DNA from: Utricularia gibba
Taxonomy: Eukaryota > Plantae > Magnoliophyta
Direction: 5' to 3'
NCBI GenBank assembly: GCA_002189035.1
Contig: NEEC01000012.1
Location: 992,001-1,056,000, forward strand
Length of the DNA: 64,000 nucleotides
Under the pieces are notes generated by a model. That model searched no databases and was not told where the DNA came from. It worked only from the letters and a program-made list of their open reading frames with translations. This document shows, one piece after another, positions 3,120 to 47,779 of this stretch. Numbering within the stretch: position 1 is the stretch's first letter; every line of letters begins with the position of its first letter. The position numbers were made by a program, and so were the translations under genes.

Positions 3120-6100
3120 TTACCAAATCCAAAGAGGACCCATGATAGATATTGGTGTCCAGATGGCTAGGCATAGAATCTCCTCAAATGTATCGCATTC
3201 CAGGATCTTGGGAGTTCCACACCATCTAACTGCTCTAGTCAATATGCTCCCTTTCCAGTTGCGATCTAATTTTCCCATGTGTCTCTGTGGTTGGATGCTC
3301 CGGAGGATCAAATCTCCTTCCGAGAATTCCCTAAAGGATACAGACTGATTGTAGCTTCGTTGTGTTCTTCTCTGATAAGCCCCTAATTGACTATAAATAT
3401 TTTGTTGCTTTTCTTCCAACAGTTCCAATTCCAGTCTTTGTAAGTCGGCGTCTCCTCCTCATTATAGTGTTCAACCCTGTAGCTCTTCAATGTTAGTTCA
3501 ATCGAACACACTGCTTCCAACCCATAAACCAGCAAGAAAGGAGACTCTTCCGTAGTGGTCTGAGGGGTGGTACGATACGACCACAACACCTCATCCAGCT
3601 GATCCGCCCATGATCCTCCGTAGTCTTCGAGTTTGGTCTTCACACCCTGCTTGAGTGTTCGATTCGTTACCTCCGTAAGGCCATTACTCTGAGGGTGGTA
3701 CACCGAAGTGAAGTTATGCTTGACTGAATATTTGTTTAAGAATGCGTCCATTGTTCCTCCCGCAAATTAGGTCTCATTATCGGTCACTAGTTCTCGAGGA
3801 ATCCCAAACCGGATGAAGATGTTTCTCCAAAGAAATCGGATAACCATCTCCTCTGATATCTTAGTCACAGATTCGGCCTCCACCCATTTGGAAAAATACT
3901 CGACTCCTACGATAACAAATTGTTTTTGACCTGACGTTTGGGGGAATGATCCCATAATATCTACCCCCCATTGTTCAAATGGGCATGAGAGTGGAAGAAC
4001 GGTCAGATCGTTTACCTGTTCTCTCGGAATGTTGGCGTGGTATTGGCACACCTTACACTTCCTCACCATTTCAGGAATATCGTGCTTCATGGTTGACCAA
4101 TAATATCCACTTCTCAAAGCCTTGCGGCATAAGGATCGCACACCAATGTGAGCTCCACACTCTCCCTTATGCAAGTCGGTTATAAGTTCTTGAGAGTGCT
4201 CCTTCCCTATACACTTCATTAGGGGTCCGTCAAGGGATCTACGGTAAAGATTCTCGTTCACTAGTGTATATCTCTTCGTCCTAGACTCCAACCATCTGGC
4301 TTCTAGTTTTATTGGTGGTGTTTCTCCTCTTTGTTGGTATCGAATATAGGGTAGGGTCCAATCCTCAAAAAGGTTCAGTTGCGATGAGATGTCGTTCCTT
4401 GGTTGTTGAGTAATATGATTTACTGCCCGCAAGGTTCCTGACTGTGAACCCTACAGCCGGACTGTCACACTTCCCTCCTTTAGTTCCGGAAGCCCTGCGG
4501 CAAACTTGGCGAGACTATCCACGAGTCCGTTTTCCTCTCACGCAACATGGGATAAGGTGAACTCCTTGAAAGTTTTGGCCAGCTTCTTTACCTTGACACA
4601 GTATAGAGCCATGAGGGGGTCATGAGCTTCATATTCGTCCGAATTCTGTCCTTACACAAGCCGTGATATAAATGTTGGAGGGCTTCATATTCGGCCACAT
4701 TGTTTGAGGCGGGGAACAGGAATTTTACCGCGATATAAATGTGTTCCCCATCCAGAATCCAGATGTCTATGCCTCCTTCAACCCCATTGTATGTTGAACG
4801 GTCGTTAATTTCCATAAAACGGTCAATAGGCTGGGTCATCTCAACCACAAAATCGGCAAGTTGTTGGGCCTTGATTCCTGTTCTCGATTTGAACTTGATA
4901 TCCATCATGCTCAATTCGACCGCCCATTTTGCGACCCTTCCAGAAATCTCTGGTCGAGATAGGATACTCTTCAAGGGCTGATTAGTGAATATCATGATGT
5001 GTCGATACTAGAAATATGATTGGAGCTTGGTGGCCGCCATTTTCAAAGCCAAGATGAACTTCTTTATCACTGTATCGAGTTTCGGCTAGCAGCAAGACCT
5101 TGCTCACGTAATACACCACCAAGTGTTTATCTCCCAAGATAGTTTTCAGGACTACACTCACAAGAACGGGGGATATTGATAGGTAAAGCCCTAGGGGCTC
5201 CCCTTCCCTCGGGGAAACTAGAAGCGGAGGCAAGGAGAGATATTCTTTGAGCTTCTCAAAAGCGATTTGTTAGTCTTCGTACCATTCTAAGGCATTTCCC
5301 TTTCTCAACGCCTTGAAGAAAGACGCCGACTTATTGACTGACCGAGATATGAAAGGGGTGAGGGCAGCTAGTTTACCTATAAGGCTCTGGTATTCCTTTA
5401 TGATCCTTGGGGTTGTATTTCACATATTGCCTTAATCTTCTTGGGGTCGGCTTCGATCCCTCTTTCTGTTACGTAGTGTCTGAGGAATTTTCCACTTTGC
5501 ACTCCGAAGTAACATTTCAATAGGTTGAGTTTTAATCCGTATGACCGACATAAATAAAAGCAAGAAGCTAGATAAGCCAAATGATCCTCTTCATTCCTTG
5601 ACTTAACGATCATATCATCTGCATAAACCTCCATTGAAATTCCGATCTCGGAGGAAAAGATTTTGTTCACCAGTCTCTGATAGGTCGCCCCAGCATTCTT
5701 CAGACCAAAAGGCATTGCGACATAGCACTAAACCCTGTCGTTGGTGTAGAAGGTTGTTTTCGGCTGGTCCTTTTTCGCGACGAAAATTTGGTGATACCCA
5801 GAGTAGGTATCCATGGTGCTCAAGAAGCAGGACTCGACATTGGGTTCCACCAGCTTGTCTATCTTTGGTAAGGGATAGGGATTCCTTCACAACAGGTGTT
5901 GAGATCGATGATATCGACACACATTCTCCATTTTCCCCCGAGTTTCGGGACTACGGCTACCCATTCTGAGTATTGGATTTCCCTCACGTAACCGACTTCA
6001 AGAAGCTTCTTTGTTTTCTCCTTAGAGAAGTGTCGTTGCATCTGCCGAATCGGTTTTGCCCACGGATAGGTATCGATGTGATGCTCAGCAATAGATTGAT

Positions 6101-7250
6101 CAATTCCTACGAAATCCACAGCATTATTCCTTAGGGTTTCCGCTAACCTTTTTTCAAACTCGCCTTTTGTGTATCTCCCGATAAGAGCTGCAAGGATTTA
6201 TACCCCACCGGTTCCATGGCTCGCCTAGGAGGTTCCTGGGATTCCTTCTCCACCATCATTACTCTCGGTTTCTTCACGCAGGGGTCATGGCAAGAGGACA
6301 CATAACAAGACTGAGCGGCTGGACGGTCGATATCTAGCATGCAAATTCCCCTAGGTGTTGGGAATTTCACTTTCAAGTGCACAATTGAGGGCAGCATACC
6401 GAATTGGTTGATACCGGGTCAATCGAAGATCACGTTATATGAGACTTTCGAATCTAGAATCAGGAATTCTAATCTTTCGGTCCGGCTTTGCCCTGCCGCA
6501 CTGAACGTTGTTGGGTTTCTTTTAGACATCGTATGTTTCAAAAGCAGCAAAATTTTAAAAATTTTGAGAAACTCCAAACGCAGATCTTGGATGTTCAAAA
6601 TACCTTTTAGATGACTTCATTGTTCACCAACCGCCAATAGTAGACGGCCTTCATGGTATCCACACGTGGAGCACTCCGTCAATAACCTTTTCAAGGTTGT
6701 TAAATGCTGGTCGAATTCCTCAAATGCTAGCAAAGAGAATAGCCCCTTGTGGATCAATCTCAGAGAGCACGAAGAACAATACTCTTGTGAATTCCTCAGG
6801 GAACTTAATATGTGCCAGCCTATCCGTATTTGTGATATCCTCATTTAACAAACACTCTAGCTAGGGAGTTTTTAATTTGAGCATAAGTGCTTAAAGAACC
6901 TCACATTATGATCTCATCATAATTTTTATAGCACATAGATCAAGTAGAAGATTTTATCAATGATAAGATTTTCCAGTGAATTGATTGTCTATAAGAACAC
7001 ATACACCAACAATCGTGATGGGTATGCTTATTTTCCCAACAATTTGCACAGCCTGTTGATCGAATGCATATAACTCCATACGGATCGACGGATATCCCCC
7101 TCTTTAGATGACGCTAGTAGCTCGTCAACTTCCTTTTTCATAATGTTGCAGGAAGACCCTTGATCGATGAGGATCCTCCTCACCGTGGTTCTCCCGCATA
7201 TCCCGGTTACCACCAAAGATTCATTTCGTGCGGCTGCGCCAATGAGAATG
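3120..7250 (-). pseudogene. Tat gypsy pol (PR-RT-RH-second RH-INT), frameshifted
   Basis: RILIDQGSS (PR), MPFGLKNAGATYQRLVN and YADDMIVKS (RT), TNQPLKSILSRPEISGRVAKWAVEL (RH), NNVAEYEAL (second RH), HKGECGAH...CKVCQ and FEQWGVDIMGSFP...VEYFSKWVEAE, YHPQSNGLTEVTNR (INT). Confidence 0.95.
6509..7011 (-). mobile_element. Internally deleted solo LTR (same family as 12198-13697) nested in the gypsy protease
   Basis: Reverse complement of both ends of 12198-13697 (TGTTGGGTTTC... and ...ATACACCAACA). TSD AACGT/ATCGT (4/5). The protease frame rejoins across it. Confidence 0.88.
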
Positions 7251-7859
7251 TCTTTGTTAGAGAAATGGATCTCCTCCGTCTCCCATGCAGCTCTCTCAGA
7301 CTATCATTTCTCGATTTCGAAGATCTCTCCTTTTCTAGCCTCCTCCATATATCTCTTTCGTGATTTCTGGACTCGTCAATCTCGGTCCGCCCAGACACCA
7401 TGTGGATTTCACGGACGTAGGGGGGACTACCCTGCCCTCGATTCGTGTCTCTTGAACTTTCCGGTCTATCTTGGTCCCCTTCGTGGTTTGAGACTTCGCT
7501 AGCTCGCCAGATTCCTCCTATTGGTTTTGGGGGGAACTTCGGGTGTCGGCTGCCCTTGCTTCCCGTCTGGCTATCACGTCCCCTTTTTCGTTCTATCATC
7601 TGTGCAGGGTTCTGTATTGCATTGCTCATTCCACCACCCGTATGATACTACTCGATCATCTCTTCATTATTCGGCAGTTGACGGTGTCGTGTCCCGTGGT
7701 TTTATGTATTTCACAATAGGCCTCAGTTCTGGTTGGTTCCACCTGATATACCTCACGGCGTTTATTCGGTCGAGAGGGCCGGATAGGTTGCACTTCTTGT
7801 TGCGGTGCTGGGTGGATCTCTATGCAACTTTTCATCTCGACCTTGAGGTTGTTTTCAAC

Positions 7860-8777
7860 TCAAATATACTTCATGATTTTTTGTAGCAATTCTCCGAGAT
7901 TCTTTGGTGGGGATTTAGATAGACTTTGACCCAACTTTGACGTTCCCAAGGCCCGCTTCATTATTTGTACCCTTTCCTTCAAATCTAGCTTGACGTCGTG
8001 TGCCATACAGTTGAATCGATCAATGAATTTCTTTAAGCTTTCTCTTCTATGGTCGTACCGAATGGAATACAATGCTGCCTTTAATGGTGGGGCTTTGATA
8101 TTTACAGCATATCGGGTGGTGAAGAGTAGCACCAACTCCCGATAGGATCCCACACTACATGGCTCTAATTGTTTGAACCAGATCTTGGCTCCCTTTTGGA
8201 GCGAGCATATAAACAGCTTACACTTTATGGCTTCCAAATGCTGCACCGTAGCCATCCTCATGTCAAAATCAGTCACGTGAGATATAGGGTCTCCCTTCCC
8301 ATCATATGTGGGCAGCCTATCGGTGACTCTGAATCCCCTTTCAGGCTCTTCTCGAATCAATTCATCCGGGAAGGGATCAAAGCGAAGTGCAGGGGTCTTT
8401 CCCGGATCTAATCCAATTCTCTCTTCAGTTCTTCTTCCCTTTTTTCTAGGACTTCATTACTCACGTCTTTCCTATCCGTTCCGGGCTCATAAATGACTTG
8501 GTTGCGCCTTTTCCTTCGCAGTATCTCCTCCTCGATTTCAGACTCAGTCTCCATGTCCGGGGTATTCTGGAATAAGAGGTTGCTTCTTCGCTCCTAGTGC
8601 AGTTTTGGGTGTTCCCTCTTGGGCGTTGGAGTTCAGACATGAAGGTGTCCTGAAGTCGGCAAGGATTTCTGTTAGCAGGGCCTTCAATTGTTCCCAACTG
8701 GTGATCATAAGACCAAGGTCTTGCACGTCGGCGCTTCCATCATTAGTCGGGTTGGTGGCTATGCTATTTTCCGCCAT
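7860..8777 (-). pseudogene. Tat gypsy gag remnant
   Basis: LPTYDGKGDPISHV...CKLFICSLQKGAKIWFKQL...SYRELVLLFTTRY (retrotransposon gag motif); probable start MAENS just after the PBS. Confidence 0.85.
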
Positions 8778-18494: not shown

Positions 18495-20734
18495 CACAGT
18501 TGTCCAAATTTGAATGCTTGCAAGGTGTTTATAATACGACAGGGAAGCAAAAGCACATGTGACTACATTAGACTGAAAATGGCATTGCATAAGTTTAGGT
18601 AAACTCATACCTATGGGTTTTTAGTTGGTTTGTCTAAATTTGTGAAGTAAATTTAAACCTAACAGTACCCTATAGACGAAGCATAGGTAAAACATTAAAC
18701 TTATATATAAAACCAACTAAACCCATGAACAAAACAAGCACTCAGAGCTTGCCTCACATTCAATTGTAACCAACGAAAATCCAACACATGGTTTTAAGGA
18801 AGAGCCCTCATAATTAGCTAGATTGGCTTTAGGTTTCATAAATGACAAAATCTTAGTAGCACAAATCCCGATGAGCTCAAAAAGAAGAGTGAAGTTGCAG
18901 AATATGTGGACAGAAGCTGAATGAAGTTCATCAAATCCCAAGTTAAAGAAAAAAGAGTATTTTCAGAATGATAAGAAAGTGAAAATATCTGCACACATGG
19001 AAGAACACGCCATAGACTTCTAGGAGGGGGATCTGAGGAAGAACTTACAGGATGGAATGAAGAACATGAACCAAGAACCAAATCCTCTTTTGAAGACTTC
19101 TTTCGCTTCTGAAAAACATTACTCCTATCTCAAAATAGTTTTAGCTTTTTCATGTAACTGTTTACGATTATAGTATATTTTGTTTCTTTTCTTGTTATTA
19201 AGTTGTGGAACAAAGATGATTTTTATGTTATGTTATGAAAGTATTTTATTTTCCCTTAGTGTGAGTAGCTAGTCACTTAGGGGTGCCTTGGTACTAAAAA
19301 AGGATAATGTGCAAATCATCATTTTGATTTTATTAATCATAAATCACACAACTTCCTTACCAAATAGGATAGATCCAAAAGGAAGAGGTAATGAGACTTA
19401 TCTTAAACAATTCTAATGAGAGGTAGATCAAAGATTAGAAGAAAATAAGAGTTTAGGTAGACCTAAAGAGTGATATGAAAAACTTCTATGCTGAACTTTT
19501 AGTTATGGAAAAGTAAAAGATATATTTTTTTCAAAACATCATTATTTTCAAATAATAAAAGTATTTTTAAAATCATATGATAAAAAAAACTTTTGAAGAA
19601 GTCATAACGTGTGTGCTTTTTCAAAAATTTGTTGCCCAACATGTGGTACAAAATTGAAGAGTACTTTCTCTTAGGGCTGTTGCTTACGATATGGTGTGAA
19701 TTTTTTCTGTTTTCCCTTTCTTTCCTTATTTTTCTTCTATTTAGGTGGCTGCATTCCATAGGTCACTAATTGGAGTTCTTCAATATCTCAACTAGTTGTT
19801 TGATTGTAATTCTTTCTATTAGCAGGCCTTTCACATCACGATATTGAATGTTATATCTTGTTTTCTAAAGTTTTGATTTTGTTTTTATTTTTCTCTATCT
19901 CATTCAAAAGAATGGGGCGATTTTGTAACTGAGGACTTTTCAATTGAATTCATTGAAGAAATTTACCCTAGTACATTACATAAGATGAACTCAATTAATA
20001 CCTACATTTTCAATGGAATTAATCCATTTTTTTGTTTGTTGTTTCACCTTTGAGCTTGGTTGGTCCACATCTACATCCTCTGTGATCAAGTTAGGCACTG
20101 TAGTGGGTCTGTGAACCATAGGTCACCTTCTATTGATCCTTAGCAATTGTATATGGATCACTTTCACATATATATATTTATGGTGTAGAGATATGCCTCA
20201 CCGGGGGAGTTTTTACCAAATCCACCCACTACAAAAAAACTCAGTTCAAAACCATTCACTTTGTACATCTCACCTCAATTGCATGTCAAAACCACCCATC
20301 CTACCGATTTTCTTTTTTATTTTTGAATTTCTTTTTGACAACATATTTTGATACTATTATATTTTTTACAAAAAAATAAAAATGTATTACATTCGTTTTG
20401 CAAATATTGTAATAAATATTATTAAAGTATCTTTTTTAGAATTCAAAAATTATATTAAAAAAAATAAAATAAAATTATATTTTTCATAATTATTATATAT
20501 TCAAAAATATATACAATTAAATAATGGAAAAATAAATAATTTAAACAAAACGAAAAATCAAATTATATTATATATTCTTTTACAAATAATAAATCAAATT
20601 AAAAACCATAAATATCGCTTCATTTAACTTTTTCATTTTAATATTTTTTATTTATGTTGATTGGTGTAATTCATTAATTACAATTATCAGAAATAAAAAA
20701 AACATATATAAAAAAAACAACAATTACATATTTA

Positions 20735-21370
20735 TATCGATCACTACAATTCATCAACTATACTTACCAAAAATGAAACTAATAGAAAGAAAATGATAAT
20801 TACATATTTCTTCCAATAGCTATAATTCATCAATTACGGTTATCAGAAATAAAATTAATATAAAAAAAAATAATAATAGCCCATTTCTAACAATCACTAT
20901 AATCATCAATTATAGTTACCACAAATAAAAATAATATAAGAAAAACCACAATCATTTATTTCTGTCAATCACTATAATTCATCAATTACATTGATTAGAA
21001 AACATGGTGATAGTAGTCTATTAAGCAAAAGTGTTCCGAACAAACATAAAAGAGGAAATAAGAATTACTCGAGTAATAGCATGTATCTCTAAATTTTACG
21101 GTCACCGTAATTACCGATTACAGTTACTAGAATTGAAAGTAATATAATGAAATGATAACCAATTTCTACGGATCACCGAAATCATTAATTACAGTTACTA
21201 CAAAAAATGTTTATAATACTTCATTAAGCTAAACGATGATTACCTATTTCTGCTGATCATAGTAATCATCAATTACAGTTACCAGAAAATATGCTTATAG
21301 TATTCTACCAAGCAAAATGACGATTACCTATTTTTGCTGATCACCGTAATCATCAGTTATAGTTACTAGA
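20735..21370 (+). repeat. Left subterminal array, ~8 copies of a ~33-bp core (ATCACTATAATTCATCAATTACAGTTACCAGAA) at ~75-bp spacing
   Basis: Cores near 20737, 20813, 20889, 20966, 21100, 21169, 21253 and 21337. Confidence 0.85.
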
Positions 21371-21423
21371 TAACAATAAAGAAAAAGTGCTCCTAATATG
21401 CATAATGAAATAGAAAATTAAAA

Positions 21424-23021
21424 TTACTCTGGTAATGCTTTGTAATGCTCCCAGTCTGGATGGTCTTCATTCATTGGGGCTTGACCATTACGAAAATCAC
21501 GCACAAAGGATGGTATATCAGATGCATCTATAAGTTCATCAAGAAAAGTCTTCATCTCACCCCCTTCCATAAAAGATGAATCTTTTTTATGATCCATGTG
21601 CTTGTAGGAGTATGGAAATATGACATTGTCAACCTATTTGAGAACCATTAAAGTATAATCTAAACTAAAAAAAATAAAATTTCACTTATGAAATTTTTAA
21701 CTAAAATTATTACCGGATTTGTTGTAGACTCGTATTGGGAATCATCTACCAACAAGGTGTTACCATGTATATACTGGCTATGAAAAGCATCATCCTCCCA
21801 TATTTTTCGCAACTCTCTCAGCAAAACCATACTTGGTGGCTTCTTGAGGACTCAAAGGTTTATGATGGTGCATTTCGTTCCATCCCATATGAATGCCAAA
21901 TTTGACATCTTCTCGCCAAACATCCAGTTAATGACTTGGCTTAGTTGTGCACTGTTACAAAAAGAATAACATGTAAAACATATATATAAAAAAGATAATA
22001 TAATATTTTGTATATTACCCTCCACGTGAGGACCTTAATGCAACATCAAAATGTTGCATACACAATTCCATGAACTTCCTAGCATTTGGTCTTAGAAACA
22101 CTGAAAATATAGGGTTCAGTGTTTCTAAGAATGAAACCAATATAGCATTTGTTTCATTCAAGTCAATAAATTAGCAACTAAACATATGTTGCAAATGTGT
22201 GAAATACTAAATAAATACCATATTTGCTCGCCCATAAATCCACTTACCGGGATGCCCTTTGATGGTTGATGATGAATGAAAAATAATATCAGCAAAACTG
22301 CCATTGACGTCGAATACTACTAATTTCCGCACCATTGGAATATGACTACTTGATTCACAGAAAGAAGGCCATCTGGATTGATACCACTTTAGTTGTTGCT
22401 TCAACGCCTTATTTTCAGCTGCCAAATCATTGGTTTCATTGTAAACTACCACATCTTCGTGTAAATCATCAGCATCATTTCTACTTTGATCATCCACATC
22501 ATCATTTTTCTTTGTAATCCTTTTTTTCCCACACCAACACTTGGCTGTGTCCCGGACTCTAAAGATGGGAGGTAGGATTGTAGTCAATAACCTAGTCTGT
22601 CCTTTAAAGGAAGCAATGAATTCATCAACGACATCCCTTGGTAACATCTCAACACCTAATAGCAAGCATAAGTAAATTAGATCAATAAAATCAGAACAAT
22701 TCACATAAAAAAACATAGTATAAAAAATTGTTTAACACATAAAATACCTTGTGGTTTTCTCATAAGATGAGAATTTGGAAGTGTGCGTGGAAAATCATTT
22801 GGTAAATCTTCAGGAGGAGAAACCCATACAAAACTTGTCCACCAACTATCATAGTCACTTCGTAGAACTTTCACTAATTTAATTGTAGACTTACTCTTTA
22901 TCACATAATTTGGTGAATTCTTTATTCGACTAAACATGCACACAGCAAAGAAATAAGCAATTCTAGGGAAATGCTTTCCTCGCAGGCAATGTAAATCGAT
23001 GCCAATATATATGCCACTCAC
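21424..23021 (-). pseudogene. MULE-borne NIF/FCP1-like HAD phosphatase-domain gene, at least 5 exons, one in-frame stop
   Basis: Minus-strand exons ~23021-22748, 22655-22248, 22100-22019, 21951-21714 and 21633-21424, all with GT-AG introns and compatible phases. Spliced protein: ...RKLVVFDVNGSFADI...VFLRPNARKFMELCMQHFDVALRSSRG...LAFIWDGTKCT...LRELRKIWE...NTLLVDDSQY...NPVDNVIFPYSY...GGEMKTFLDEL...HPDWEHY. This follows the plant NIF-family motif series. TGA at 21852-21854. The 5' end is uncertain. Confidence 0.85.
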
Positions 23022-24007
23022 TTATGAGTCAAATGTGAAAATGAAATTTGAAGGCATTTCAAAACTTGCAACATAAATGGTACCACTAGTACACGCAAGC
23101 CACATCTAAGGTGCTTAGTGCTGATAGCAAAACCCTACAACATAAAAAGAAAGAATGCCATCTATTCTTTTTAGATTTACTCACAACATTGATCAATACA
23201 GTGTCAAAAAGTTTCAGATAAAACAAATGTTGTATGTTTTTAGATCCTCGTGAAATAGAGAACCCAATGCTATGACCATTAAGATATAAAAAACAAACAA
23301 AAATTACACATAAAGCATACCTGTTCTTGATGATTAAACCTTTGAAATGTGAAGATTGACACGGTAGTTGAAGAAGAAAGAGACGAATTGTGTAAATAAA
23401 TTTTTAAATTAATTAATTTGTTTTGTAAAACCCAATTTAATAAATTCAGGAAAATTGTCAGTCTGTTTAATCGGGAACCAAATGATACTTTTTCAATCAG
23501 AGATACTGAAGCATGTGATAAGTGGAAGGCACGTGAAGTAAAATTAGATGTGATTCTGCTAAAAATAGCAAATTTACAGATGGTCACCATAATTGAATAT
23601 AGTTATGATCATATATATCTTTTTTTACATCTATTAATGTTTTGAACACCATAAAACCTATAAATGCATCTGATTAATGTTTTGAAGATGGGATTATAAA
23701 ATATAATCATATATTGAACATAGTTATGAATTACATATGATTTTCAACTTATTACAATTTTTTTTACATACATGAATAAGATTCAAAAAAATGTGAAATG
23801 AATGTGTATGTAGTGTTTTTGATATAGTAATGAGAATGTGTTTCATTGTAAAAAATTCTTCGATTTCGACTTTTTTTACTCAAAAAACAGGAAAAGTATA
23901 TACATACTTTCTATTGCATCATACACATACACTTAATCACAAGTTTTTAGGTTGTTAAACATACTAAACCTTAATTAATTTGTGTAATTTTGATTATATC
24001 TTTAGAT

Positions 24008-26953
24008 GCTGACTGGTTTCTCCATTACGGTGTGCCGCCTATATTCCATTATCAGCCGAAAAACACCGACAACTACATGTTCCAAGATCAATAAAGTCTA
24101 CTGACATGTGTCCCCATGTTTTGGACTCACATGCCTCAATCACATGACCGAATTGTTCAAATTGAAAGAATTTTGAAAACCATTCTTCCATCCCTCTCCA
24201 GAACCTCATCTTCTTTCAAGCTCATTCTTAAATATCTCTCTATTTGGATGGCTTTCAGATCACTCTCATACAAGGTCTTCTTTGGAGGTCAAATCTATAA
24301 TTACGGGAATTACATAAGTTATAGTGTGGCACCAATCTAGTTTTTTAGTCAGATGCCGATATTTCATTGGAAGAATTAAAAGCAAGGTTATATGAGATTG
24401 TTCAATTGTCTTCTTCGAGGTTCAATCTTAGATTATCAGCCCAGTTTTTTCATGTTGTGACTAGAGAAACGAGGTATTTGAATTTAAAGACACAGAGCAA
24501 CCATGATTATCTTCATGAACCTAACCATGTTATTACTTTGCTGGATTTATTTGTGGAATACGACCCATTTTCTTAAGAAGAACCTCACTCACAATTTGGA
24601 GAAAACGGTAATGACTATTTCTTTCTTGTAAATTTAGAAATTGTATATATTTTTTTTAATTTTATGGTATTCTATTTTTCTGTAGATGAATATATGGATT
24701 ATGATTTCGATCCAGTCCAAAATATTGATGGCGATTCATTTATGCAATTCATTAATGAAAATGAGGTTCCCGATATTGATCATACTCCTCAAAACTCAGA
24801 AGGCGAAAAGAATGTGCTTGAAGGAAATGCAAGTTGTGATTCGGAATGGTTTCCTAACTCAGGTTTACATGATATAGAGGAAGAATCAAGTAATCATGGA
24901 GTATATACACATCAATATGAACCGAGATTCAAGGAAGGTGATCTATTTGAAGATAAAGAAGATTTTTGAAGACAAGTTAGAGAATTTTCCATTGAAATTG
25001 AAAAGGAGTTCATTGTTGGTGATACTGAGCCTAGAGTCTTAGAGATGTATTGCAAACAACGTGATACTCAAAATTGTCACTAGAGGATTCGCGCATTGTA
25101 AACGATTGGGAAAATGGAAGATCTCAAAGCTTATTGAGCCTCACACATGCAAGTGACAAGGGGCGGGATTCTTTTATCACAGAAACATCAATCATGATTA
25201 TATCTCTGAGATTGCTAAGCAATATATTGAAGCAGACATTGGGACCAAAGTGTCAACTATTATTGCAGCTGTATTGGATAGAACTGGTTATGAAGTACCA
25301 TATAAACGTGCATGGTATGGAATGGGAAAGGCCTTTGAGAAGGTGTATGACACATGGGAGGAATCAATGAAGAAACTTCCAGCTTTCTTAAATGAAGTTG
25401 CCTTACAAAATCCAGGCACCGTAATCCAATGGAGGAATAAGGAAGATGGAGTCACATGGCACTATTACTTTTAGGCATTTGGACCATGTATACATGCCTA
25501 CCAGCACACCCGTCCGGTTATTTCAGTTGATGCAATGCACTTGTATGCAACATACAGGCACAAAATGCTCATTGCAGTGACTATCTCTCAATGTGGAAAG
25601 ATTTTGCCACTTGTCTTTGCCATAATAGATGAAGAAATTGATGCTTCTTGGCTATGGTTTCTAGAGCTAGTGGAAACTTACATTGCTTTAGGAAAACCCA
25701 CGTGCTTGATTTCTGATAGATGTGACTCTATTCGAAAGGCAACAATAAGAGTTACAGCATTCAGTGAAGAATTCAGAGGATGTCATCGCTATTGCTTTCG
25801 TCATTTTCGAGCAAATTTCTTTGACAGATTTAAATCTGAGACGTTCACTGGGTACGTGGAGAAATTCTATGATTATATAGAAGAGCTCAGAATGATAAAT
25901 ATTGCGGCTTGGAACTACTTAATGAATGTTGCTCCTAAAGCTTGGACAATATCTCATGATGGTGGCCGAAGATATGGAACAATAACTACCAATCAAGTTG
26001 AAGGAATGAACGGTGTTTTGAAAGAAGCACGACATCTCCCACTTACGGCTTTGGCTCAGATATGATTAATTTGTGTTTTTTGTTTTAAATTTAATGAAAA
26101 TTTTGAATGCAAGCTACATTTGCTCGATGCAAAAAGTATATTTCAAAAGGTTTGGAGTTGGCATTAGAGGCGCAAAGGAAGAATCAAGTCCTTTCGACAC
26201 AAGCGCAACGACTGTTTGATAATTGGGACAAGCCTAATCCTTATTCAAGAGTAGAGATTTATGATCGTTATAAAATGATTGTTCAAGTAATCACCTGAAA
26301 GAAAGCAAATGGGAAAGATAGCATTTGCGTGGTGCGCATCAAGGAGGGCACATGCACATGCTGCAAATAGCAAAATTATGGAATACCATGCTCACATGCA
26401 CAATAGGTTAGACTATTATTTAATAATGTTCATTTATTCAATATGAAAGTCATGTTTATTTTAGGCGTGCAAAAGACTTGGAGTTGATTCACGACAATAT
26501 GTGGATCCCATACACTTACAACAACATTTTTTGAAAGCATACAAGGTCCAATTCCATCCACTTCGAGCAGAGAGACATTGGCCAGCAACAATGCCTCTCA
26601 TTCATGATCCTACATGTAAAAAGGTGATTAGACATGATGGTACATTTAGTTCACGATATAGGATGAATATGGATAGGGGAAGGAGCATAGGAAGGAGAAG
26701 TGGACATAATGGGAGACCAAGATTTTCACAAGATACAGCTTCACATGCACATAGTCCACCTCAGAGCCATTGGGTATCTATTGATGTACCATATCACCGT
26801 GATTTCGAAGGTGTTTCTCAACAACCACGGTCATCTCTTCAAGAACGACCTCAAGGTATGAACACTAGGTTTGATCTTCCTAGCTCGTCTACTCAACAGC
26901 CTAGGAAGCAGAAGTCACTTATGCATAAATTTTTTGGGTCGTTTATGAAATAA
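24008..26953 (+). pseudogene. MuDRA-type transposase (MuDR DNA-binding, MULE DDE and SWIM domains), with stops
   Basis: FKEGDLFEDKEDF (MuDR domain), FGPCIHAY...VISVDAMHLY...LPLVFAIIDEE..ASWLWFL...LISDR...HRYCFRHFRANF (DDE core), GRRYGTITTNQVEGMNGVLKEARHLP, GTCTCCK*QNYGIPCSH (SWIM). In-frame stops, e.g. 24967-24969. Confidence 0.93.
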
Positions 26954-26989
26954 AGATAAATATTATCAATATGTAAAATACTATTTGCC

Positions 26990-27395
26990 TGGTAACTGTA
27001 ATTGATGAATTACAGTGATTGGCATAATTATGCACTTATCGTTTCTTTTATATTACTTTTGTTTTTGGTAATTGTAATTGATGATTACAGGAATTGTCGA
27101 AAATAAACAATTTTCGTTTTGGTTACATTACTTTCATTTCTGGTAACTATAATTTATGAATTACAGTGATCACCAGAAATAAGTAATTGTCATTTTCTTT
27201 ATATTACTTTCATTTTAGGTAACTGTAATTGAGGAATTACAGTGATTGGCAGAAATATGCAATTATCATTTTCTTTATCTTATTTTTATTTCAGCTAACT
27301 ATAATTTATGATTGCATTGATTGTAAAAAATAGAGAATTATTGTATTACCTATATTACTTTCTGGTAACTGTAATTGATGAATTGTAGTGATTGG
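26990..27395 (-). repeat. Right subterminal array, ~6 copies of the same core in inverted orientation
   Basis: TGGTAACTGTAATTGATGAATTACAGTGATTGG-like cores near 26991, 27066, 27141, 27218, 27292 and 27362. Confidence 0.85.
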
Positions 27396-28399
27396 TTAAC
27401 ATAAATTATCATATGTAAAATTTGTTTTCACTAATTGAAATACAATTAGTATATAGTAAAACATGATTTCTATTATTGTATTATAAAAGAAATCAACACA
27501 TTATAGATATATATGTATTATAATGATTCATATAAGATATATCTTTGTATTTTTTCAAAAAAATCCAATATCTTGTGGAATATTATAAATATAAATATTA
27601 TATTTTTTTTCTATTTTAAAATTGTTGTAGATTTCTAATAACTGTAATAGATTATTACGATGCTTGAAAGTCTCGGATACTGTAATTTATATTGTAGACA
27701 TCAATTTTAATATAAATTAATATATGTAAAATTTGTTTTCATTAATTGAAATATAATTATTATATATAGGAAAACATGATTTCTATTATTATATGTTCAA
27801 AAATAATGATACATATAATATATATGTATTATATTTGTAATTTCAAAAAAACGTAAATATCTTGAGGAATATTAGAAATATAAATATGTGTATTTTTTAT
27901 TTTAAAATTATACAATTATAATTATGAGTAAGTTTTTTGAAAATATTTTATTAATTTGTTAGTTTGAGTGACATAAACAGTTTTTTTAAAAAAATTGACA
28001 TATTTATAACAGAAATTATATTATTTACATGTATATATTTATTACATTTAAATGTGTACGATATCTAAGAAGAAAAGCAATTGAAAAAAGAATAGAAAAA
28101 GTTAGGATAGGTGGTTTTGTCCAAGTGCACACAGTGAGTGTTTTTGGAATTATGTTTTTTGTAGTGGGTGGTTTTGAAAATGACCCCTCACCCGGGTTTG
28201 AAGCTTTCAAGCTAGCCACTTCATTGAATATAGACCCCATTAATGGTGGTTCTTCTCTGTTGTTTTACCATCTCTTTTCTCTTTACAACTTCCTTAGTTC
28301 CTCAACTAGTTGTTTCTATTTTTATTTTATCATTGAAAATTTATAGCATGTTATTAATTATTGTGTATTATTATTGCAAGTTTTTATAGAGGGAAAAAG

Positions 28400-35616: not shown

Positions 35617-37815
35617 GATAAACGGAAATTTTAGCAATGTCATTGCAATAAAAGCAAATTTTCGTATAAAATAAATTTATAAGTCATAATCTACATGATA
35701 ATTGATTTTGTATCGTTTCAAAGCATGTTCTTCCACTGTTCTTGAATGTTGTTTTTACTTATATAAGACCCTACTTTCTCATTATTCTCAATTGATTTTG
35801 CGTCTTTCACACTACTTTGATCTTTTTAGAGAGAAAACGTATTTTGTAGATTTTTAGGGTACTTTTGGATCAATTTGAGAAGAAACAAGATCCACCAAAT
35901 TATAGACTTGATGGGCCACGAATCCCAACCCAAGACTCGGTCAAACGTTGAAGATTTGGTCCAAGATTCGTGGATACGATAGAGATGTGAATAAGATCTT
36001 CGAAGATTTAGATAAAAGATTTAGATAGAAGATCTTATCCAAACCCATCGAATAAGCTCAAACGAAGACTGGGATCTATTCTCTTATAAATACCCCACCC
36101 CTCAACCATTTGAAACGTCTTTGACTACTTTTACTTTGAATCTTTCCTATTTTCGTGTCTATTTTCATGTTTGAGTCGAGTCTGTGCGTGTAGGCACTTG
36201 CGGCTGAGTATCTGTGGTGATGCCTTGCTTGCGCAAGTCCTGCACGTGTGACTCTTTTACTATGTTTTCGACATTTAAATTGAGGTTTGATTCTTTTTTT
36301 CGCAACGTTTTCTTTACCAACGTGCTCTTTAGTACCATATAACCCTAAAGGAGTGTGAGAAAATCAAAAGTTGGCCTTAAGCACCTAAGAAGAATGGCTC
36401 AATCGAACATAGTTGGTAAGACATATTCTGTCTAATCTATCTGCGAAGTGTGAGATATTGGGGTTAGATTTTGGTGTGGGAAAAACATGGGTTATCACAA
36501 GAGGTGAAATGCCTCTGGTGGCGTTGTTGATTCCATAATCCCACAAAACAAGGAATGGTGCTATAAAGGTCACCGAGTAGCACCACTTTAGAATAACACC
36601 CCCAGAGCTTGTGCAAGCAGATCAGTCTTCAAGGTTCGCTCACACACATGGATGAGTTTTAAGTAGGTAGATCTTAAATCTAATGCCACTTTCCTTATTG
36701 TTTTCAAAACCAAATCTTTCTTTTGTTTTGAGTCTTTTTAAGTCTTTGTTTTGAAAAGAAAATTCCAATTACAATTCCCTGTGGATACGATCTTATTTTC
36801 TTACTTCGACGGTTTCTGTGTACTTGCAGAATCATCATCACTACACAAAATACAAATTTAGAAAACTTGTATAGTAGATGTCAGGGTCGATCATGAGGAG
36901 CTTGTTCTTGCTAAATGTTTCAGTAGATGCATAATTAAGGATAATAGTAGGTTTTTGTCTAAGGTCGGACTAGCAGTGGCAAGTAAGTTCAGTAAATGAA
37001 ATCATGTTTAAATGCAAAAGGTAACAAGTAATAGTTCTAACTCAGAATAATATGAAAATGTCATAAGAGTTTGCAAGTGATGTGGTGCTAAAATGTCTAA
37101 CTTAAATTACTATATTACCATACTCATAACTTTAAATAACCTAAGTCTACACAAGTCATTTGTCATATTTTCGGCTAAGCTAGTCCTCAATATCATCATC
37201 AACCTTACAATTAGGTCTACCCGCATGCAATGTGTATAAAACTAGGTCTATCCGGCTCTACTAGTTCTACCCTGAACTAACACCCACTGCGCCCATCTTG
37301 ATTTGTTGATCTACCATTAAACCAAGCTTCTTAGTCATGAAGTTACGTGTTCCCCTCGTTAAGTCTACCTATGAAATGATAGAAAAAAGAACTAAGAAAC
37401 AATGATAAATTTTACTAAGAATCCTAGACCCACACCACCATGCTTCACCTTAAGACATTCTTAGAGTTCTAATTACTCATACTTTGAAGGTAAAACATGA
37501 TAACCTTAACATAAAACAACGAAACTATCAAGAACATTATGAAAAAGTTGCGTGCAAAAACTGAAAACATCAACAAACTAAAATAAAACAGTAAGTCTTC
37601 TGGTTTCCGTTTGCTACTATTTCTTGGCCAGAACAGTAATGCTAAACTAGTTCTGATGCTGTTCTTGAGGGTGAAGTTCTTCTTCTCCTCTCCTGGTCGG
37701 TGTTCTTCGTGTTCGAGCTGTTTGTCGGTGGAGAAGTTCTTCTTCCCAACGTTGGAGGTTGGTGGAGTTGGAGGGAAAACCCTCGTGTGTATTCTAAAAA
37801 CTTCTTGTCTCATTT
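35617..37815 (-). mobile_element. Truncated Athila-like LTR (family of 47780-48818) carrying a nested solo LTR
   Basis: 35617-35695 and 36841-37815 are the reverse complement of ~47780-48818. Confidence 0.85.
35696..36840 (+). mobile_element. 1145-bp solo LTR (Athila-like)
   Basis: TGATA...CATCA termini; perfect TSD CTACA (35691-35695, 36841-36845); 3' end TTCCCTGTGGATACGAT...GTACTTGCAG typical of Athila-type LTRs. Confidence 0.88.
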
Positions 37816-38244
37816 CATCACTCAAATGTGCATAAGTAGATTCCTCTTAAAAAGTGTTTTCGAAGATCACATGTTATAGAATTGATCCCTTCAAGGTCAC
37901 TAAAGATCACTGTTGCCAACCCATTTTTTCTTCTTCTTTTTTTTTTCTTTTCGTTTCTTTTTTTTTTTGGTAGTGGAGGGGTAGCTTGTTCCAAACTAAT
38001 CCGGGCATAATTTGATTGCCCCTTTTCTTCGACAGAGTGTTGACCAAGCACTTACACCTTATAACACCAGACTCCTTCATTCTCCTCTGGATTTGTCTAT
38101 CCTTGCTCACCCTTTCACTACTTATTGAGTTTGCATATATTCTTTTAATATGTGCTACTCTTTAGGACTTGGGTCTCAGGTTTTTTCTTTTTGTTTTTTT
38201 TCTTCGACACTTTATTCTCCTCTCTTCTTGTTTTCGTGGTTGGC

Positions 38245-41750: not shown

Positions 41751-43149
41751 AAATAATACTTAGCAAGGCCGGTCATTAGTTTCAATGAGTTAACCAATAC
41801 TGTAGATACTGAGAGGAGGCCAAAAAGGAGATCGAACAAGTACTTATCTGTTATAGTCAGCAGTGTTATACTCGGTACTCATTTTATGCTTATGTCAACA
41901 TGTACCGAGGTTGCGCGTACTAGGATATAAAGTGTGGGCTAATTAGACGAAGTGACAACAAATGTTTGGAAATGATCAAGCTATCGAAGATAATATTGTG
42001 AGCTTTGTAGACGTGACCAAGAATAGAAAATTTGTCAAAGAGTTTGGTGAGCTTTGTAGACGTGACCAAGAATATGAGCTTTTCCTACCTTGACACATCT
42101 TATGACCCATCTGGTTTTGGTGTTGATTGTATTAATGTCACCCATAGAGTAGGGACTTCAAATCACACAATAGCATAGTTTCCTTGCGGTGTTTTGGGTG
42201 ACGCGCATGGGGGTTGAGGGGAAGCAATGATTCTATGCAATTCTTTGTCTAAATGGAGGAGCTTAATATGCAGACATGTAAGGAGTTACATTGCTTGGGG
42301 TCAACAATGGTGCAACAAGCTTGAGACTTGGTAGAGAACTAGCATATGGCTGGGAAGATCCTCATTGGTATGTCGTAGCAACTGTCTATGATTTAAGTGA
42401 CTATGAAAGAGAACCTATTGTGCATAGCCTAGCCTTTGACCTTACACCTTGAAATAGTTGTGTGGTTTTTATCTTGTGTTGGAGTTCAGGAATGGCTGTA
42501 TGTCTATCTTTTGTTACATCTATCCACTTGTTAGTTTATACACTGAATATTTTAGCTTTTAAGACAATGTGTATGGTATTGCACATGAAAGTTGGGGCTG
42601 AAGATGAAAACATGTAGCTTCTATATGCAACAACAGATTAAAATTGGGAAGGTTTTATATAGGGATGAACATTGTATTATCGGATAAGTAGTGTTCCAAA
42701 AGCACGTTGTTAGGAATGAGAGCACCGCATTGGCATTAACTATTGTGATGTCATCTACAAAAGCACTACATATGGGCATACTCTATGCAATGCTAAGTTG
42801 TGGCATTGGATCGAAAGATACTAGATAGTTGTTTGGAGTAATGAAAAAGTTATACGATGGTTTAAGCAATATCCATGCAAATTAAGACAACATCGTCTAT
42901 CAGGTAATAACCTTGTAGTTCTTCCACAACAGCTGCTCCTCATTCATCGAACGTTGACCTACCCATCGGCAATCGATGAATGTGAGAACCTCCATCTACT
43001 CAATGAGCTTTTCTAGAAATGCTCTAATATCACCCCCCCCCCCCCCCCGAACTAGAGAAAATTCATTGACTGAGGTGTGTAGGTGGTTGAGCACATGATG
43101 ATCTTGGACTGTCTAATGAAAGTATACAATCTCCAAACATGTGATGGAG

Positions 43150-43560
43150 TGGTGCAAGGAGTGTTGAGACACTCATTGAGTTGGCAAGTGACTTGTATGG
43201 TGTATCATCGATGTGTAGAGTATTTGCCCTTGAACTCTGTGTTGGGACCACTGTTGCAACTCAACATCTTCAGCTTAATAGTGCTTCTCTTGTTGTCATG
43301 CACGGGATAACTAGTGTCATATGTCTTGGATCCATGCCATTGGAAGACAAGCTTGCCAGTGGCCTTTGGTCAAAATCACCACTAGATGACGTCATACAAC
43401 TATTTTGTGAAAGATGTTACTCATAAAATGGAACAATAGCATCATGCATCCTCACCACATAATCATTGTATGAACTTATCGGGCTCTTGAAGACCAGATC
43501 GTAACATGAAAGTGTTTCATGCAACACTGTATCAACTCTTGTGCTCTTGGTGGGATATAC
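43150..43560 (-). pseudogene. Older relic of a NIF/FCP1-like gene related to 21424-23021
   Basis: YIPPRAQELIQCCMKHFHVTIWSSRAR, then after an intron-sized gap LYDVI*W*F*PKATGKLVFQWHGSK and NTLHIDDTPYKSLAN. Same motif order and apparently the same intron position. Confidence 0.72.
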
Positions 43561-44479
43561 AATACAACAACAAGACAATTGAAACATGAAAAAGAAATTG
43601 ATATCAAATTCAAAAACTTCATTCTACTCTTACAAAAGGTGGCAAGATGTGTTTAAGTGACTTCACTCTACTAGAGAACAAATTTAAAAACTTCTTCACT
43701 GCAGGCTTTGGCAAAACCTCCAAATCTAAAACAAGTAGAGAAAAATAGTATGTCATCTCACCCCCATAGATTAATTATAAATAAGCACATGCATGTGATT
43801 ATGTGATGACTCTCCAACATTCTACGAAACCATCATTCTTGTCGAACATTCTGGATTGTTTGGTAGGCACACCCATACAAAATTAGTCCATCAATCATCA
43901 TATGTGCTACTAACATCTTTAACAAGAATCACACCTAAGGGATGAAAAATTTTATAATGCAGTAGTGGCAAATCTAAGTGGAACCACCGAGAGCAAACGG
44001 TTTTGAATTGCAAGTCGTATACGAAAGCAAGATTAAACAAGGGGTTTTTGATAGAAGGTGGGTTTCTACTTTAAAGAAATTCATAAAACTCTGAAAAGGG
44101 GTTTCCACACTAAAGAAAAACAACAAAATACGTAAATCAGCATTTCTAAAGTTTAAAAGTAAACATTACATTTAATACAAAAATTAACCATGTTTATAAG
44201 ATAACCTAAACATGCTCCAGTTACTATTCCAATTCATGCGTGAAAATAGTAAAGAGCACGACAAAGAAAGCATGCTAAGTTGAAGACTCTCAAACAAGGT
44301 AAACATTCAAGTTCATTAATGTAAGCGTGGAAAGAAAGTGTAGAAAATAAACATTTTTTTAGATCTGCAAGTCTGTTCAATGGGTCGTTCATCTTCTTCC
44401 TCTCATGTAGATAGTGTTCTGTTGTCATTCTCGGGGATGGAAGTAGCTCTAGTGTCACTCTGGACTCCCTCATCTCCTT

Positions 44480-46080
44480 CTCTTTCTAGGGTATTCTAAT
44501 TCCTTGTCCCCACTCCTTCAAGTGATAATGCACTCCTCGGTATGATGCCAAGAAGCCTTCCATATTAGCATATCCATTATCGCATAGGTAGTTTGCTCTT
44601 GCATCATCATGTATCCATCTAATCTTGAGAGTACATCATTTAACATTCTATCTATAGAAGACCCATCCCACCAAATATGCAGTTATATAAAATATTGTGT
44701 CCTCATCACATACACCCAACACAATTTAAAATATCACACCCTTTTGATTTCTATACCTAGCATTTTCTGATGTCTTTATTCATATATTGATATACATACT
44801 GTCTATGGCTTCAACAGAACTCCACAAATAGATAATCAATTGTAGCCATATTTTAAAAAATATGTATGAAAGATTTGTCTACCTAGAAGAATTTGAAACT
44901 TCCAAGGGATGTAGATTCTCAGTGCCACATGCAACATCAATTGGAAGTACCGTGAAACACTCTCAGTACTCTTCCTTAAAATATGCGTTTGAATTCAAAT
45001 TTTTTTATGGTCAACTAGAATTGCTTAAAACATGCAAACCATCTCTAGCTCAGCAACGTATTTCCCAACCCTTAAAAATGAAGAATTTTCTGATGGGCTA
45101 CATAAAATAACAAAAGCATCTATAGTGATTCTCAAGTTCTCTATTGTTGTTCTGTTCACATCACTGACCAATCTACTCATGTACTCAACTTGTTTAGAAA
45201 TCTTATCAATGAGAGAATATCTGCGTCTCACCCTTTATCCCATGGTAATTTCCCTAATATAAGTATATTAACACATTCATCCTAATTAAGTATTCAGTTA
45301 ATAGTATCAGAGCTGCACTCAAGATGACATGACTTTCACTAGAAAAATTATTTTCCTCACAACACTGAAACAATCAAGGAAAATAAATCCACACACACAA
45401 AACTACTGATTTTGAAATTGAAAAATAAATCAGTTACAAGAACCACAATATGCATTGGCATTAGATAAAACCCATCAACAGCAAAAAAAAAAAAATGTAC
45501 TAGAAGACCCACTTGTCTACTCCCAATCAATACACAAATGTGATACTACCGGTAATTTGCGTTGCTTGCGGCTGGTTTCTGGTGGATCTATGTTGAAATT
45601 CAGAGTAATGTGAGGGCAAAATTGGAAGCTGCCACACTTTTTTACGTAAACCAATCACCCCCTCTTACTCCACGTCGGTCGTGTAGACACCATCATTGGA
45701 AATTCCTAGGTAAGTAAGAGCCTCGAGCTACTTTGTTATATGTTCTCACTTCGTTACTCTCTTCTATCGTTTTGTTTCCTTCATTGTAGATCATAGATAT
45801 CCCAGAAAAAGATACAAAGCAAACCCAGAACCATAATGAGGAGAAGTACCTCTTACAAGCAAAATAGCTAGTGAATGATGGTGGAAAGATCGAGAATGGT
45901 TTTAGACATGTATCACCAAGTGCTACAATCTCAATTCAAGAAGCTTTGTCCATGGACTGATATTTGCCATATCTGCAGATATCGAGTAAGATGCATACAT
46001 CAAAAAAAGACTAGCTATCTTCTTGTGAATTTCTTAGTCAAATTAGATGCCAGTTTCTATGAGGCAAGAAAACACAAGAA
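44480..46080. mobile_element. Second PIF/Harbinger relic: nuclease on minus (~44480-45260), Myb-like ORF on plus (~45830-46080)
   Basis: Minus: LRITIDAFVILC..., VLGVCDED, YLCDNGYANMEGFLASYRGVHYHLKEW. Plus: LVNDGGKIENGF...PWTDI. Confidence 0.75.
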
Positions 46081-47072: not shown

Positions 47073-47779
47073 CCTTTTTCTTCATGAAGTAAGCAACACA
47101 TCATGAGAATACTTGTATTTCATATCATAAAAACCATTCTATTGAGGATCGTGAAACAATCAAATGATGCTTTATGCCAAAATCTCTCTATAGCATGTTT
47201 TTTTTTAATTATAAAAAATGTAAAAAACAATTTATTGTAGTGCAAGTGTTGATCACAAGGAGTTTTGTTTTGTAAAAAGTGTTTTGTGTTAAATTATTAT
47301 GAATGGTTACAGGTTTGTAAAAGGGGTTTAAAATACTGAATTTTGATATGAACAATAAGTAATGAACCTTGATTAAGGCAAGATGTTTGTGGGAAAGAAA
47401 ATCCGCTTTATTCTTTATCTTTAGTTGCCTAGTCTTTCACTAGTTGATTTGGAATAACACCTTATAGCACCTAGGAATAATCAACATTTCATTACACTTT
47501 TTTACAAAGAGGAGTGAAAATAGCCACATGTGATTCCCCCTATGATGATTGTGAAGACAAGATTAAGCCCACTAATGTTCTAACCCAATTTTGAGCCCAG
47601 CAGCTACCTGAAAATCATGGAAAAGTCAAGGATTTCGTGCAACTCACTGCATGTCAGGAAGCAATGAATGCATTGTCTCGAAAACCGTCTGCAAGTTAGA
47701 GGTAGGAGCAACAGAACTGTCAAATAATGTACTTGTCTTGGGTAGTGAGAGGAGAGAGAATTGCAAAGAGACTAAGAGT

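Follow-up and report, generated by a model that had tools for sequence, protein, structure and literature searches.

This work concerns a stretch of 64,000 nucleotides of Utricularia gibba (assembly GCA_002189035.1, contig NEEC01000012.1, positions 992,001 to 1,056,000; hereafter the window, in whose own numbering all coordinates are given), which contains one copy, now dead, of a Mutator-like element (MULE) of the MuDR type that is present in many copies. Beside the remnant of its mudrA transposase gene, this element carries a second, accessory gene. Our reading, to which we give a probability of roughly 0.7, is that the accessory gene is a fusion of a Transposase_28-like module with a NIF domain, that the latter was captured at the DNA level, and that the fused gene was long kept by selection inside transposons. 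The fused product would comprise, in this order, a Transposase_28-like module, a linker, a stretch that is acidic and coiled-coil-like, and a complete NIF/FCP1-homology HAD domain; once the host domain had been captured, purifying selection would have acted on the fused gene during a long evolution inside transposons. The copy found in the MULE (copy 1) makes nothing: it has about three disabling lesions, it has lost conserved residues, and no RNA was seen. Our analysis also revealed a second, very divergent copy of the fused gene (copy 2) elsewhere in the window. As the fused gene seems to have been kept by selection for long, it may encode an undescribed kind of transposon helper protein.

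Exon model of the accessory gene

The original prediction for this locus had described a five-exon minus-strand gene with GT-AG introns and consistent phases, and this model was reproduced exactly. Its first exon runs from an ATG at 22937 to 22748, the other four have the limits given in Table 1, and all four introns are of the GT..AG type with phases that agree. The coding sequence (CDS) starting at this ATG has a length of 1128 nt (375 aa) and contains a single internal TGA (21854-21852), compared to 21 and 44 stops in the other two frames of the same spliced CDS, so that the frame of the accessory gene has been preserved far beyond chance. Exon 2 is a single open exon of 408 nt that leads from the linker into NIF motif I, and the DNA around it has a GC content of about 31%.

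Identity and origin of the NIF-like domain

Host relatives were fetched from metagenomes with a degenerate DNA pattern for NTL[LI][VI]DD[ST]PYK, a motif common to both copies of the accessory gene in the window, which yielded at least 120 loci. When the spliced protein, with an X at each break, was used as a tblastn query, 76 of the 120 loci listed matched, many of them uninterrupted over the whole domain. The best match among these loci is L013 (residues 245-439, 32% identity, E 3e-28). Its open reading frame (ORF) belongs to Pfam NIF (PF03031, E 5.7e-19, profile positions 1-159 of 160), as does that of L009, which has two such domains (E 1.6e-42). A hidden Markov model (HMM) of 42 host-type ORFs from the loci listed gave the spliced protein a score of 172.5 bits (E 1.8e-52), the best of 200 shuffled controls reaching 4.5 bits. 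This match covers residues 186-438; the first 50 or so, located before motif I, align low-complexity sequence only, and the NIF part therefore amounts to about 200 aa. The HMM score and the PF03031 matches of two relatives bear out the complete NIF/FCP1-like HAD domain that had been announced from the sequence. The relationship escaped searches with single pieces: exon-sized pieces had no NIF match in Pfam, exons 2, 3, 4b and 5 gave only noise in a phmmer search of the PDB, and exon 5 gave only noise in a protein atlas search.

Motif I reads FDVNG in copy 1, i.e., the nucleophile Asp is kept and the second Asp (the general acid) is replaced by Asn. Since D-[LVIM]-N-G occupies motif I in 42 of 42 relatives among the matches listed, FDVNG is an ancestral trait of this subfamily and not a product of decay; the canonical DxDx(T/V) motif I was met neither in the spliced protein nor in the relatives of this DxNG branch that were fetched. 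Copy 1 has kept the Ser of motif II and the Asp-Asp of motif IV, and it has an Arg in place of both the invariant Lys274 of motif III and Trp224 (columns were assigned to motifs II, III and IV according to what we take to be the general layout of the HAD fold). In the alignment to the host family, 21 of the 27 host-invariant residues are kept, the altered ones being, in the numbering of L013, W224R, N231Q, K274R (the motif III position), K308E, T316N and L172V. The K274R and W224R changes probably arose through decay. Among solved NIF relatives, the profile of the DxNG branch matched UBLCP1 (3shq; E 1.1e-6), then CTDNEP1 (8ujl), and then SCP1 (1t9z). This ranking suggests that the DxNG branch is a remote member of the FCP/SCP group and, since UBLCP1 and CTDNEP1 come ahead of SCP1, that RNA polymerase II (Pol II) would not be its evident substrate.

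Some of the loci have features of their own. Two host-type ORFs of 586-596 aa (L009:1977-3734 and L101:5975-7762) contain two tandem DxNG NIF domains. Two other loci (L089:9370-10086 and L102:1775-2371) show three in-frame stops each within good full-length NIF matches; in the tree, the two form a group with a long branch, and their source organisms may use a variant genetic code.

The positions of introns 2, 3 and 4 of the accessory gene are those of host exon ends (residue 266 in phase 1, residue 293 in phase 2 and residues 372/373 in phase 0), the coinciding ends having been found in L024, L072, L077 and L023. The end at residue 266 falls inside the Val codon that precedes F.RP, and the end at 372/373 follows NP. 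Furthermore, exon 3 measures 82 nt and has the same phases in the accessory gene and in host L024. Compared to host genes, the accessory gene lacks one or two additional introns. Because three intron positions and their phases are common to host genes, the HAD domain appears to derive from a plant gene of the DxNG NIF branch that was copied at the DNA level together with its introns, and not from a processed transcript. The junction with the transposon-specific N-terminus falls inside exon 2.

Second copy and codon-position divergence

Copy 2 lies 21 kb away from copy 1, and its DNA no longer aligns with that of copy 1. Its matches include, in the same order, the WWTSFVW region, the LPP.FRV linker, RP..F/WSS, W.G.K, NTL.IDD.PYK and the C-terminal tail. 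It is full of stops and is devoid of a stretch of about 100 aa comprising the acidic and coiled-coil parts and motif I; the pieces of copy 2 gave no Pfam match to Transposase_28.

Over the 159 codons aligned between the two copies in the five significant matches, identity is 0.56, 0.69 and 0.34 at codon positions 1, 2 and 3, respectively (chance level at position 3, 0.27). This codon-position pattern recurs in the two N-terminal segments that are specific to transposons. Neutral divergence of the CDS of copy 1 was simulated, and matches were recovered with identical tblastn settings: the three codon positions stayed equal (largest difference 0.145, compared to 0.283 observed), and no match was left once overall identity had fallen to about 0.40. 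Given the excess of identity at positions 1 and 2 over a nearly saturated position 3, which neutral simulation never reproduced, the fused protein was probably under purifying selection for most of the time since copies 1 and 2 separated. The divergence between the copies thus points to past purifying selection, in agreement with the selected cargo that had been suggested. In domain trees, copies 1 and 2 join (SH-aLRT 91), and together they are sister to the flowering-plant-type hosts L013 and L042 (92).

Directly upstream of copy 2 and on the same strand, positions 44237-45234 (-) read by eye as a decayed PIF/Harbinger-like transposase. Its pieces carry what we take, from knowledge of the family, to be the usual motif series (VLGVCDED..GW, GSSIDRMLNDVL, YLCDNGYANMEGFLASYRGVHYHLKEW); these open pieces (25-83 aa) matched nothing in Pfam, including DDE_Tnp_4, or in the PDB. 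The Transposase_28-like/NIF fusion gene apparently occurs in two transposon superfamilies. A tblastx search with the mudrA region found no second MULE transposase in the rest of the window.

Two inverted repeats of about 1 kb with 86% identity (36841-37817 and 47762-48740) flank copy 2, and a gag-pol region extends from 48865 onward. They were considered as ends of a long-TIR MULE (TIR, terminal inverted repeat) and rejected, as they show no target duplication and gag-pol follows the right arm. They are more likely to be long terminal repeats of two oppositely oriented retroelements.

N-terminal part and lesions

The coding region of copy 1 extends upstream of the ATG at 22937. The frame of exon 1 (frame A) is open from 23021 on, and further upstream, in another frame, the piece 23134-23021 matches Pfam Transposase_28 (PF04195) with an E-value of 0.0025 and a score of 18.4 bits, below the cut-off of 26.2. 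The match spans profile positions 3-34 of 69, and the remainder of the domain falls past a frame change. Indeed, a TGA and a shift of 1 nt in frame, at about 23021, part the piece from frame A. On its other side, directly before it, a TAG (23137-23135) stands eight codons after the candidate ATG at 23161.

Once this upstream part is counted, the accessory gene has about three lesions, and it can no longer be called near-intact with one TGA as its only lesion. Nor was it kept better than the transposase, as the original prediction had held: it has about three lesions in 1.35 kb (2.2/kb), compared to about six in 2.6 kb for mudrA (2.3/kb; binomial p = 1.0). The derivation of the internal TGA from CGA that had been proposed finds no support either, the aligned residue being Lys in hosts and Pro in copy 2.

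A donor-like GTGAGT (strong) at 23022 and an AG at 22931 would together join the Transposase_28-like piece in frame to the exon starting at ATG 22937. We rejected 23022-22931 as a real intron, on weak grounds, namely that its removal would also remove a frame-A stretch that copy 2 keeps in frame.

The WWTSFVW piece of frame A is significantly similar to part of ORF 1244-1576, namely to what comes after its weak match to Transposase_28 (E 0.16). This ORF adjoins a Ty3/gypsy element at the start of the window. With these two sequences an alignment score of 62 was reached, compared to 25.6 +/- 4.4 for shuffled sequences, and 0 of 2000 shuffles attained it. This Ty3/gypsy element occupies 3120-8360 (-), with gag, reverse transcriptase and integrase, and the Transposase_28-like ORF stands beside it on the opposite strand (959-1640, +) and ends in a WWTSFV motif, as in the MULE gene. 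Transposase_28 is known from extra ORFs, which were found in 23% of Retand elements, a group of Ty3/gypsy retrotransposons (PMC6317226).

The N-terminal ~200 aa had been described as unrecognised. This does not hold for the first part, which is Transposase_28-like, although below the cut-off. Exon 2 found no relative among 1.84 billion representative proteins, with only two spurious matches to repeat proteins; its nearest named clusters in the protein atlas are N-terminal fragments of HAD proteins, including NIF, with weak scores, and a metagenome scan with exon 2 as protein returned 307 pattern matches, none of them real. Word-index protein searches gave nothing for the 169-aa ORF of exon 2, for the MULE ORF or for the 91-aa N-terminal piece, the length window of these searches shutting out full-length relatives. 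In the protein atlas search, the N-terminal piece gave only noise.

Family contigs and expression

Contigs of three DNA runs (X1, X3 and X7; same species label, or plant metagenome) were placed on positions 19900-25899 at a likeness of at least 80%. This retained 240 contigs in X1, 3896 in X3 and 1197 in X7, the likeness of most being no higher than 90-95%. Summed depth, which is a rough guide and not a copy number, averaged 19.8 over the NIF gene (21300-22899) and 21.8 over mudrA (24300-25899) in X1, 1252 and 1075 in X3, and 385 and 529 in X7, respectively; the depth of the left flank was zero in X1. At single sites, 13-31 different contigs cover the NIF exons, compared to 22 at one site in mudrA. 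Since the coverage of the NIF gene by diverged contigs is similar in depth to that of the transposase, the accessory gene belongs to a many-copy diverged MULE family. Together with the second copy in the window, this agrees with the original prediction that the gene is not a one-off Pack-MULE capture.

Two further observations were made on these contigs. Differences between copy 1 and the family contigs are strongly enriched in C>T and G>A (in X3, 242 and 241, respectively, of the 761 places that vary), which is what methylated, silenced repeats would be expected to show. In addition, several single contigs of X3 join about 20604-20878 to about 21989, 23175, 23279 or 23393, and thus leave out the NIF gene wholly or for the most part; such joints may correspond to deletion derivatives of the family, their anchors of only 21-24 letters being weak.

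Element boundaries and features of the locus

The MULE extends over 7,981 bp (20205-28185), its limits being set by a 9-bp target-site duplication in which eight of nine bases match. Its ends (20211-20335 and 28180-28073) are imperfect inverted repeats of each other over about 125 nt, as shown by an inverted-repeat search and local alignment, and repeats of 76-84 nt are arrayed next to both ends, in inverted orientation to each other. The longest open piece of mudrA (25475-26062) matches Pfam MULE (PF10551) with an E-value of 1.7e-12 and 48.1 bits (cut-off 27.6) over profile positions 1-98 of 99. Three-frame reading showed that mudrA is broken by about three in-frame stops and about three frame changes. 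The inverted ends, the 9-bp duplication, the subterminal repeats and the Pfam MULE domain identify the element as a MuDR-type MULE. A MuDRA element between matching inverted ends had indeed been predicted here, and the right limit can now be placed at 28185. Inside the element, mudrA (+) and the accessory gene (-) stand head-to-head, and Pfam scans of the open frames of the element found no match to Ulp1 (C48 peptidase). The GC content around the MULE is 28-37%, i.e., that of AT-rich plant DNA.

Table 1. Features of the MULE, of its accessory gene and of copy 2, with window coordinates
Feature	Coordinates	Strand	Evidence
Left target-site duplication CCTCACCGG	20196-20204		8/9 bases match 28186-28194; directly outside the inverted ends
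Left terminal inverted repeat	20205-20335	+	Aligns locally with 28073-28185 in reverse complement
Arrays of left subterminal repeats with periods of 76 and 84 nt	20667-21370		Tandem Repeats Finder (TRF); inverted matches to 26989-27395
Exon 5: C-terminal part of the NIF-like domain, tail, stop	21424-21633	-	AG acceptor in phase 0; host HMM
Exon 4: HAD motifs III and IV (NTLLVDDS), in-frame TGA 21852-21854	21714-21951	-	Splice model; host alignment
Exon 3, 82 nt: RP..F motif and HAD motif II	22019-22100	-	Length and phases as in host L024 exon 3
Exon 2: LPP.FRV linker, acidic and coiled-coil-like stretches, NIF start (FDVNG)	22248-22655	-	169-aa open frame
Exon 1, frame A, including WWTSFVW region and ATG 22937	22748-23021	-	Stop-free over 91 aa
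Accessory gene 5' part, other frame: candidate ATG 23161, TAG 23137-23135, Transposase_28-like piece 23134-23021	23021-23161	-	Pfam; codon listing
mudrA transposase remnant, about six stops/frameshifts	24349-26950	+	Three-frame reading; Pfam MULE
Right subterminal repeat array, 76-nt period	26989-27395		TRF; inverted-repeat matches
Right terminal inverted repeat	28073-28185	-	Local alignment with the left end
Right target-site duplication CCTCACCCG	28186-28194		8/9 bases match 20196-20204
Copy 2 of the fused gene, heavily decayed, very divergent	42906-44165	-	Five colinear tblastn matches, E 1e-6 to 0.03

Alternative explanations

The accessory gene could be a functionless hitchhiker, i.e., a NIF sequence captured in the manner of Pack-MULEs and amplified with the element, in which case the constraint would come from the host gene and from Transposase_28 ORFs, and both would have been joined twice independently. 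The retention of host intron positions, which is expected from any DNA-level capture, is compatible with this, as are the death of all copies seen, the lack of any RNA seen and the very long end branches of the tree, which fit relaxed constraint. However, we find this explanation unlikely, as two copies that have diverged beyond DNA alignment show the same order (Transposase_28-like part, LPP.FRV linker, NIF) and as their third positions are near saturation with positions 1 and 2 still 56-69% identical, also in the transposon-specific N-terminus. Neutral simulations never match this pattern, and the copies join in the tree; furthermore, no annotated protein resembles exon 2, so that a host gene with such a layout is itself unlikely. 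It is still less probable that the Transposase_28-like ORF and the NIF fragment are unspliced neighbours and that the GT..AG model is coincidental. Although no transcript was seen and the upstream part lies in another frame in copy 1, exon 2 runs open over 408 nt from the linker into NIF motif I, phases are consistent, a single stop interrupts the joined frame, compared to 21 and 44 in the other two, and copy 2 has the same order. As for a host or domesticated NIF gene that happens to lie between two unrelated inverted repeats, it is hardly conceivable: the domain is truly related to host NIF genes, but it is found beside mudrA, within the limits of an element that has a target duplication, its sequence is found in thousands of diverged contigs, and the gene carries stops.

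The reading of the accessory gene as a fused gene long selected inside transposons thus remains the best explanation, but several points weigh against it. The selection test compares just two decayed copies, whose end branches in the trees reach 2.1-2.6 changes per site, and their clade may result from long-branch attraction. Contig-summed depth is only an approximate measure of family size. No listed RNA run holds the accessory gene (RNA run X11 gave 0 contigs), and its splice junctions are predictions. The Transposase_28 match is below the Pfam cut-off and covers half of the model, and it was from copy 1 alone that the start (23161) and the change of frame (about 23021) were deduced. Membership in NIF was established transitively, through an HMM of 42 relatives of which two are Pfam NIF. 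Lastly, UBLCP1 acts on the proteasome and CTDNEP1 on lipin, and not on Pol II, and binding and catalysis by the protein, like its helper role, are predictions.

Possible role and significance

It is possible, although this proposal is tentative, that the intact protein was a transposon helper that bound, or slowly dephosphorylated, a nuclear target phosphorylated on Ser or Thr. The Transposase_28-like module would tie the helper to the element or to its partners, and the NIF-like domain would bind or slowly dephosphorylate the target, favouring expression or transposition of the element. The nucleophile Asp and the Asp-Asp of motif IV are kept. More broadly, and with as much reserve, Transposase_28-NIF fusions could form an unrecognised class of helpers, in which a phosphatase or phospho-binding module is mounted on an adapter, maintained by selection and exchanged between MULEs and PIF/Harbinger elements; the adapter would also be found in hAT and Retand elements, and the helpers would counter host control or regulate transposition.

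Among the proteins of plant DNA transposons other than transposases, few are understood to our knowledge, chiefly VANC; what the Ulp1 domain does in KI-MULEs has yet to be explained. If our reading is true, this is a second host-derived enzyme domain under selection in transposons, and therefore a testable case of borrowed host machinery. It is fused to a domain common to extra ORFs of retrotransposons, apparently in two superfamilies of one genome, and it would provide a first biological context for both Transposase_28 and the DxNG NIF branch, which are poorly understood. What this work adds is the selection test, the identification of DxNG as the ancestral state through the host HMM, the intron-by-intron comparison with host genes and the corrected 5' end.

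Comparison with known systems

A full-text literature search found no published description of a NIF or phosphatase passenger gene in a MULE, which is in line with the statement of the original prediction that this combination was not known to have been described. A 2026 review of gene capture by plant transposons covers Ulp1/KIU and VANC and no phosphatase (PMC13317346). Host phosphatase-like proteins of the CPL group, which are directed at the C-terminal domain (CTD) of Pol II, have been linked to silencing: CPL1 is involved in DNA methylation (PMC3776750) and CPL2 represses genes when tethered to them (PMC10027610). For the accessory gene, this link is only an analogy, as both are canonical DxDxT enzymes.

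The closest parallels come from other MULEs. KI-MULEs (Kaonashi, KIU) carry a transduplicated Ulp1 protease domain in a non-transposase gene (PMC13317346). As in the element described here, a host enzyme domain located in the second gene of a MULE was long conserved and spread with the family. However, the domain found here is a NIF/FCP1-homology HAD domain and not Ulp1, its partner is Transposase_28-like and not VANC, the element has clear inverted ends whereas KI-MULEs are non-TIR, and this type of gene is also found beside a PIF/Harbinger-like transposase. VANC of VANDAL MULEs (PMC13317346), another MULE accessory protein that is not a transposase, serves as the model for the helper role proposed here; it binds DNA motifs of its own family and causes hypomethylation, whereas the present accessory gene is known from sequence alone. 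The likeness to Pack-MULEs lies in host sequence gained as DNA, with its introns, between MULE ends. In contrast, Pack-MULEs are devoid of transposase and contain mostly decaying gene fragments, whereas this element has mudrA and a whole fused domain apparently under past purifying selection.

Each half of the fused gene also has relatives outside MULEs. With the DxNG branch of NIF (PF03031), the domain shares homology, the D-x-N-G of motif I, the DD of motif IV and three intron positions; it differs by an identity of only about 32-33% to the nearest listed host, by a very long branch, by a transposon-type N-terminus that replaces that of the host, and by its location in a transposon. The N-terminal half recalls the Transposase_28 extra ORFs of Retand elements, as its first piece fits the first half of the model and as its WWTSFV region resembles the ORF beside the Ty3/gypsy element. 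Here, however, the match is below the Pfam cut-off, and the module belongs to a DNA transposon, in which it is fused to an enzyme-like domain.

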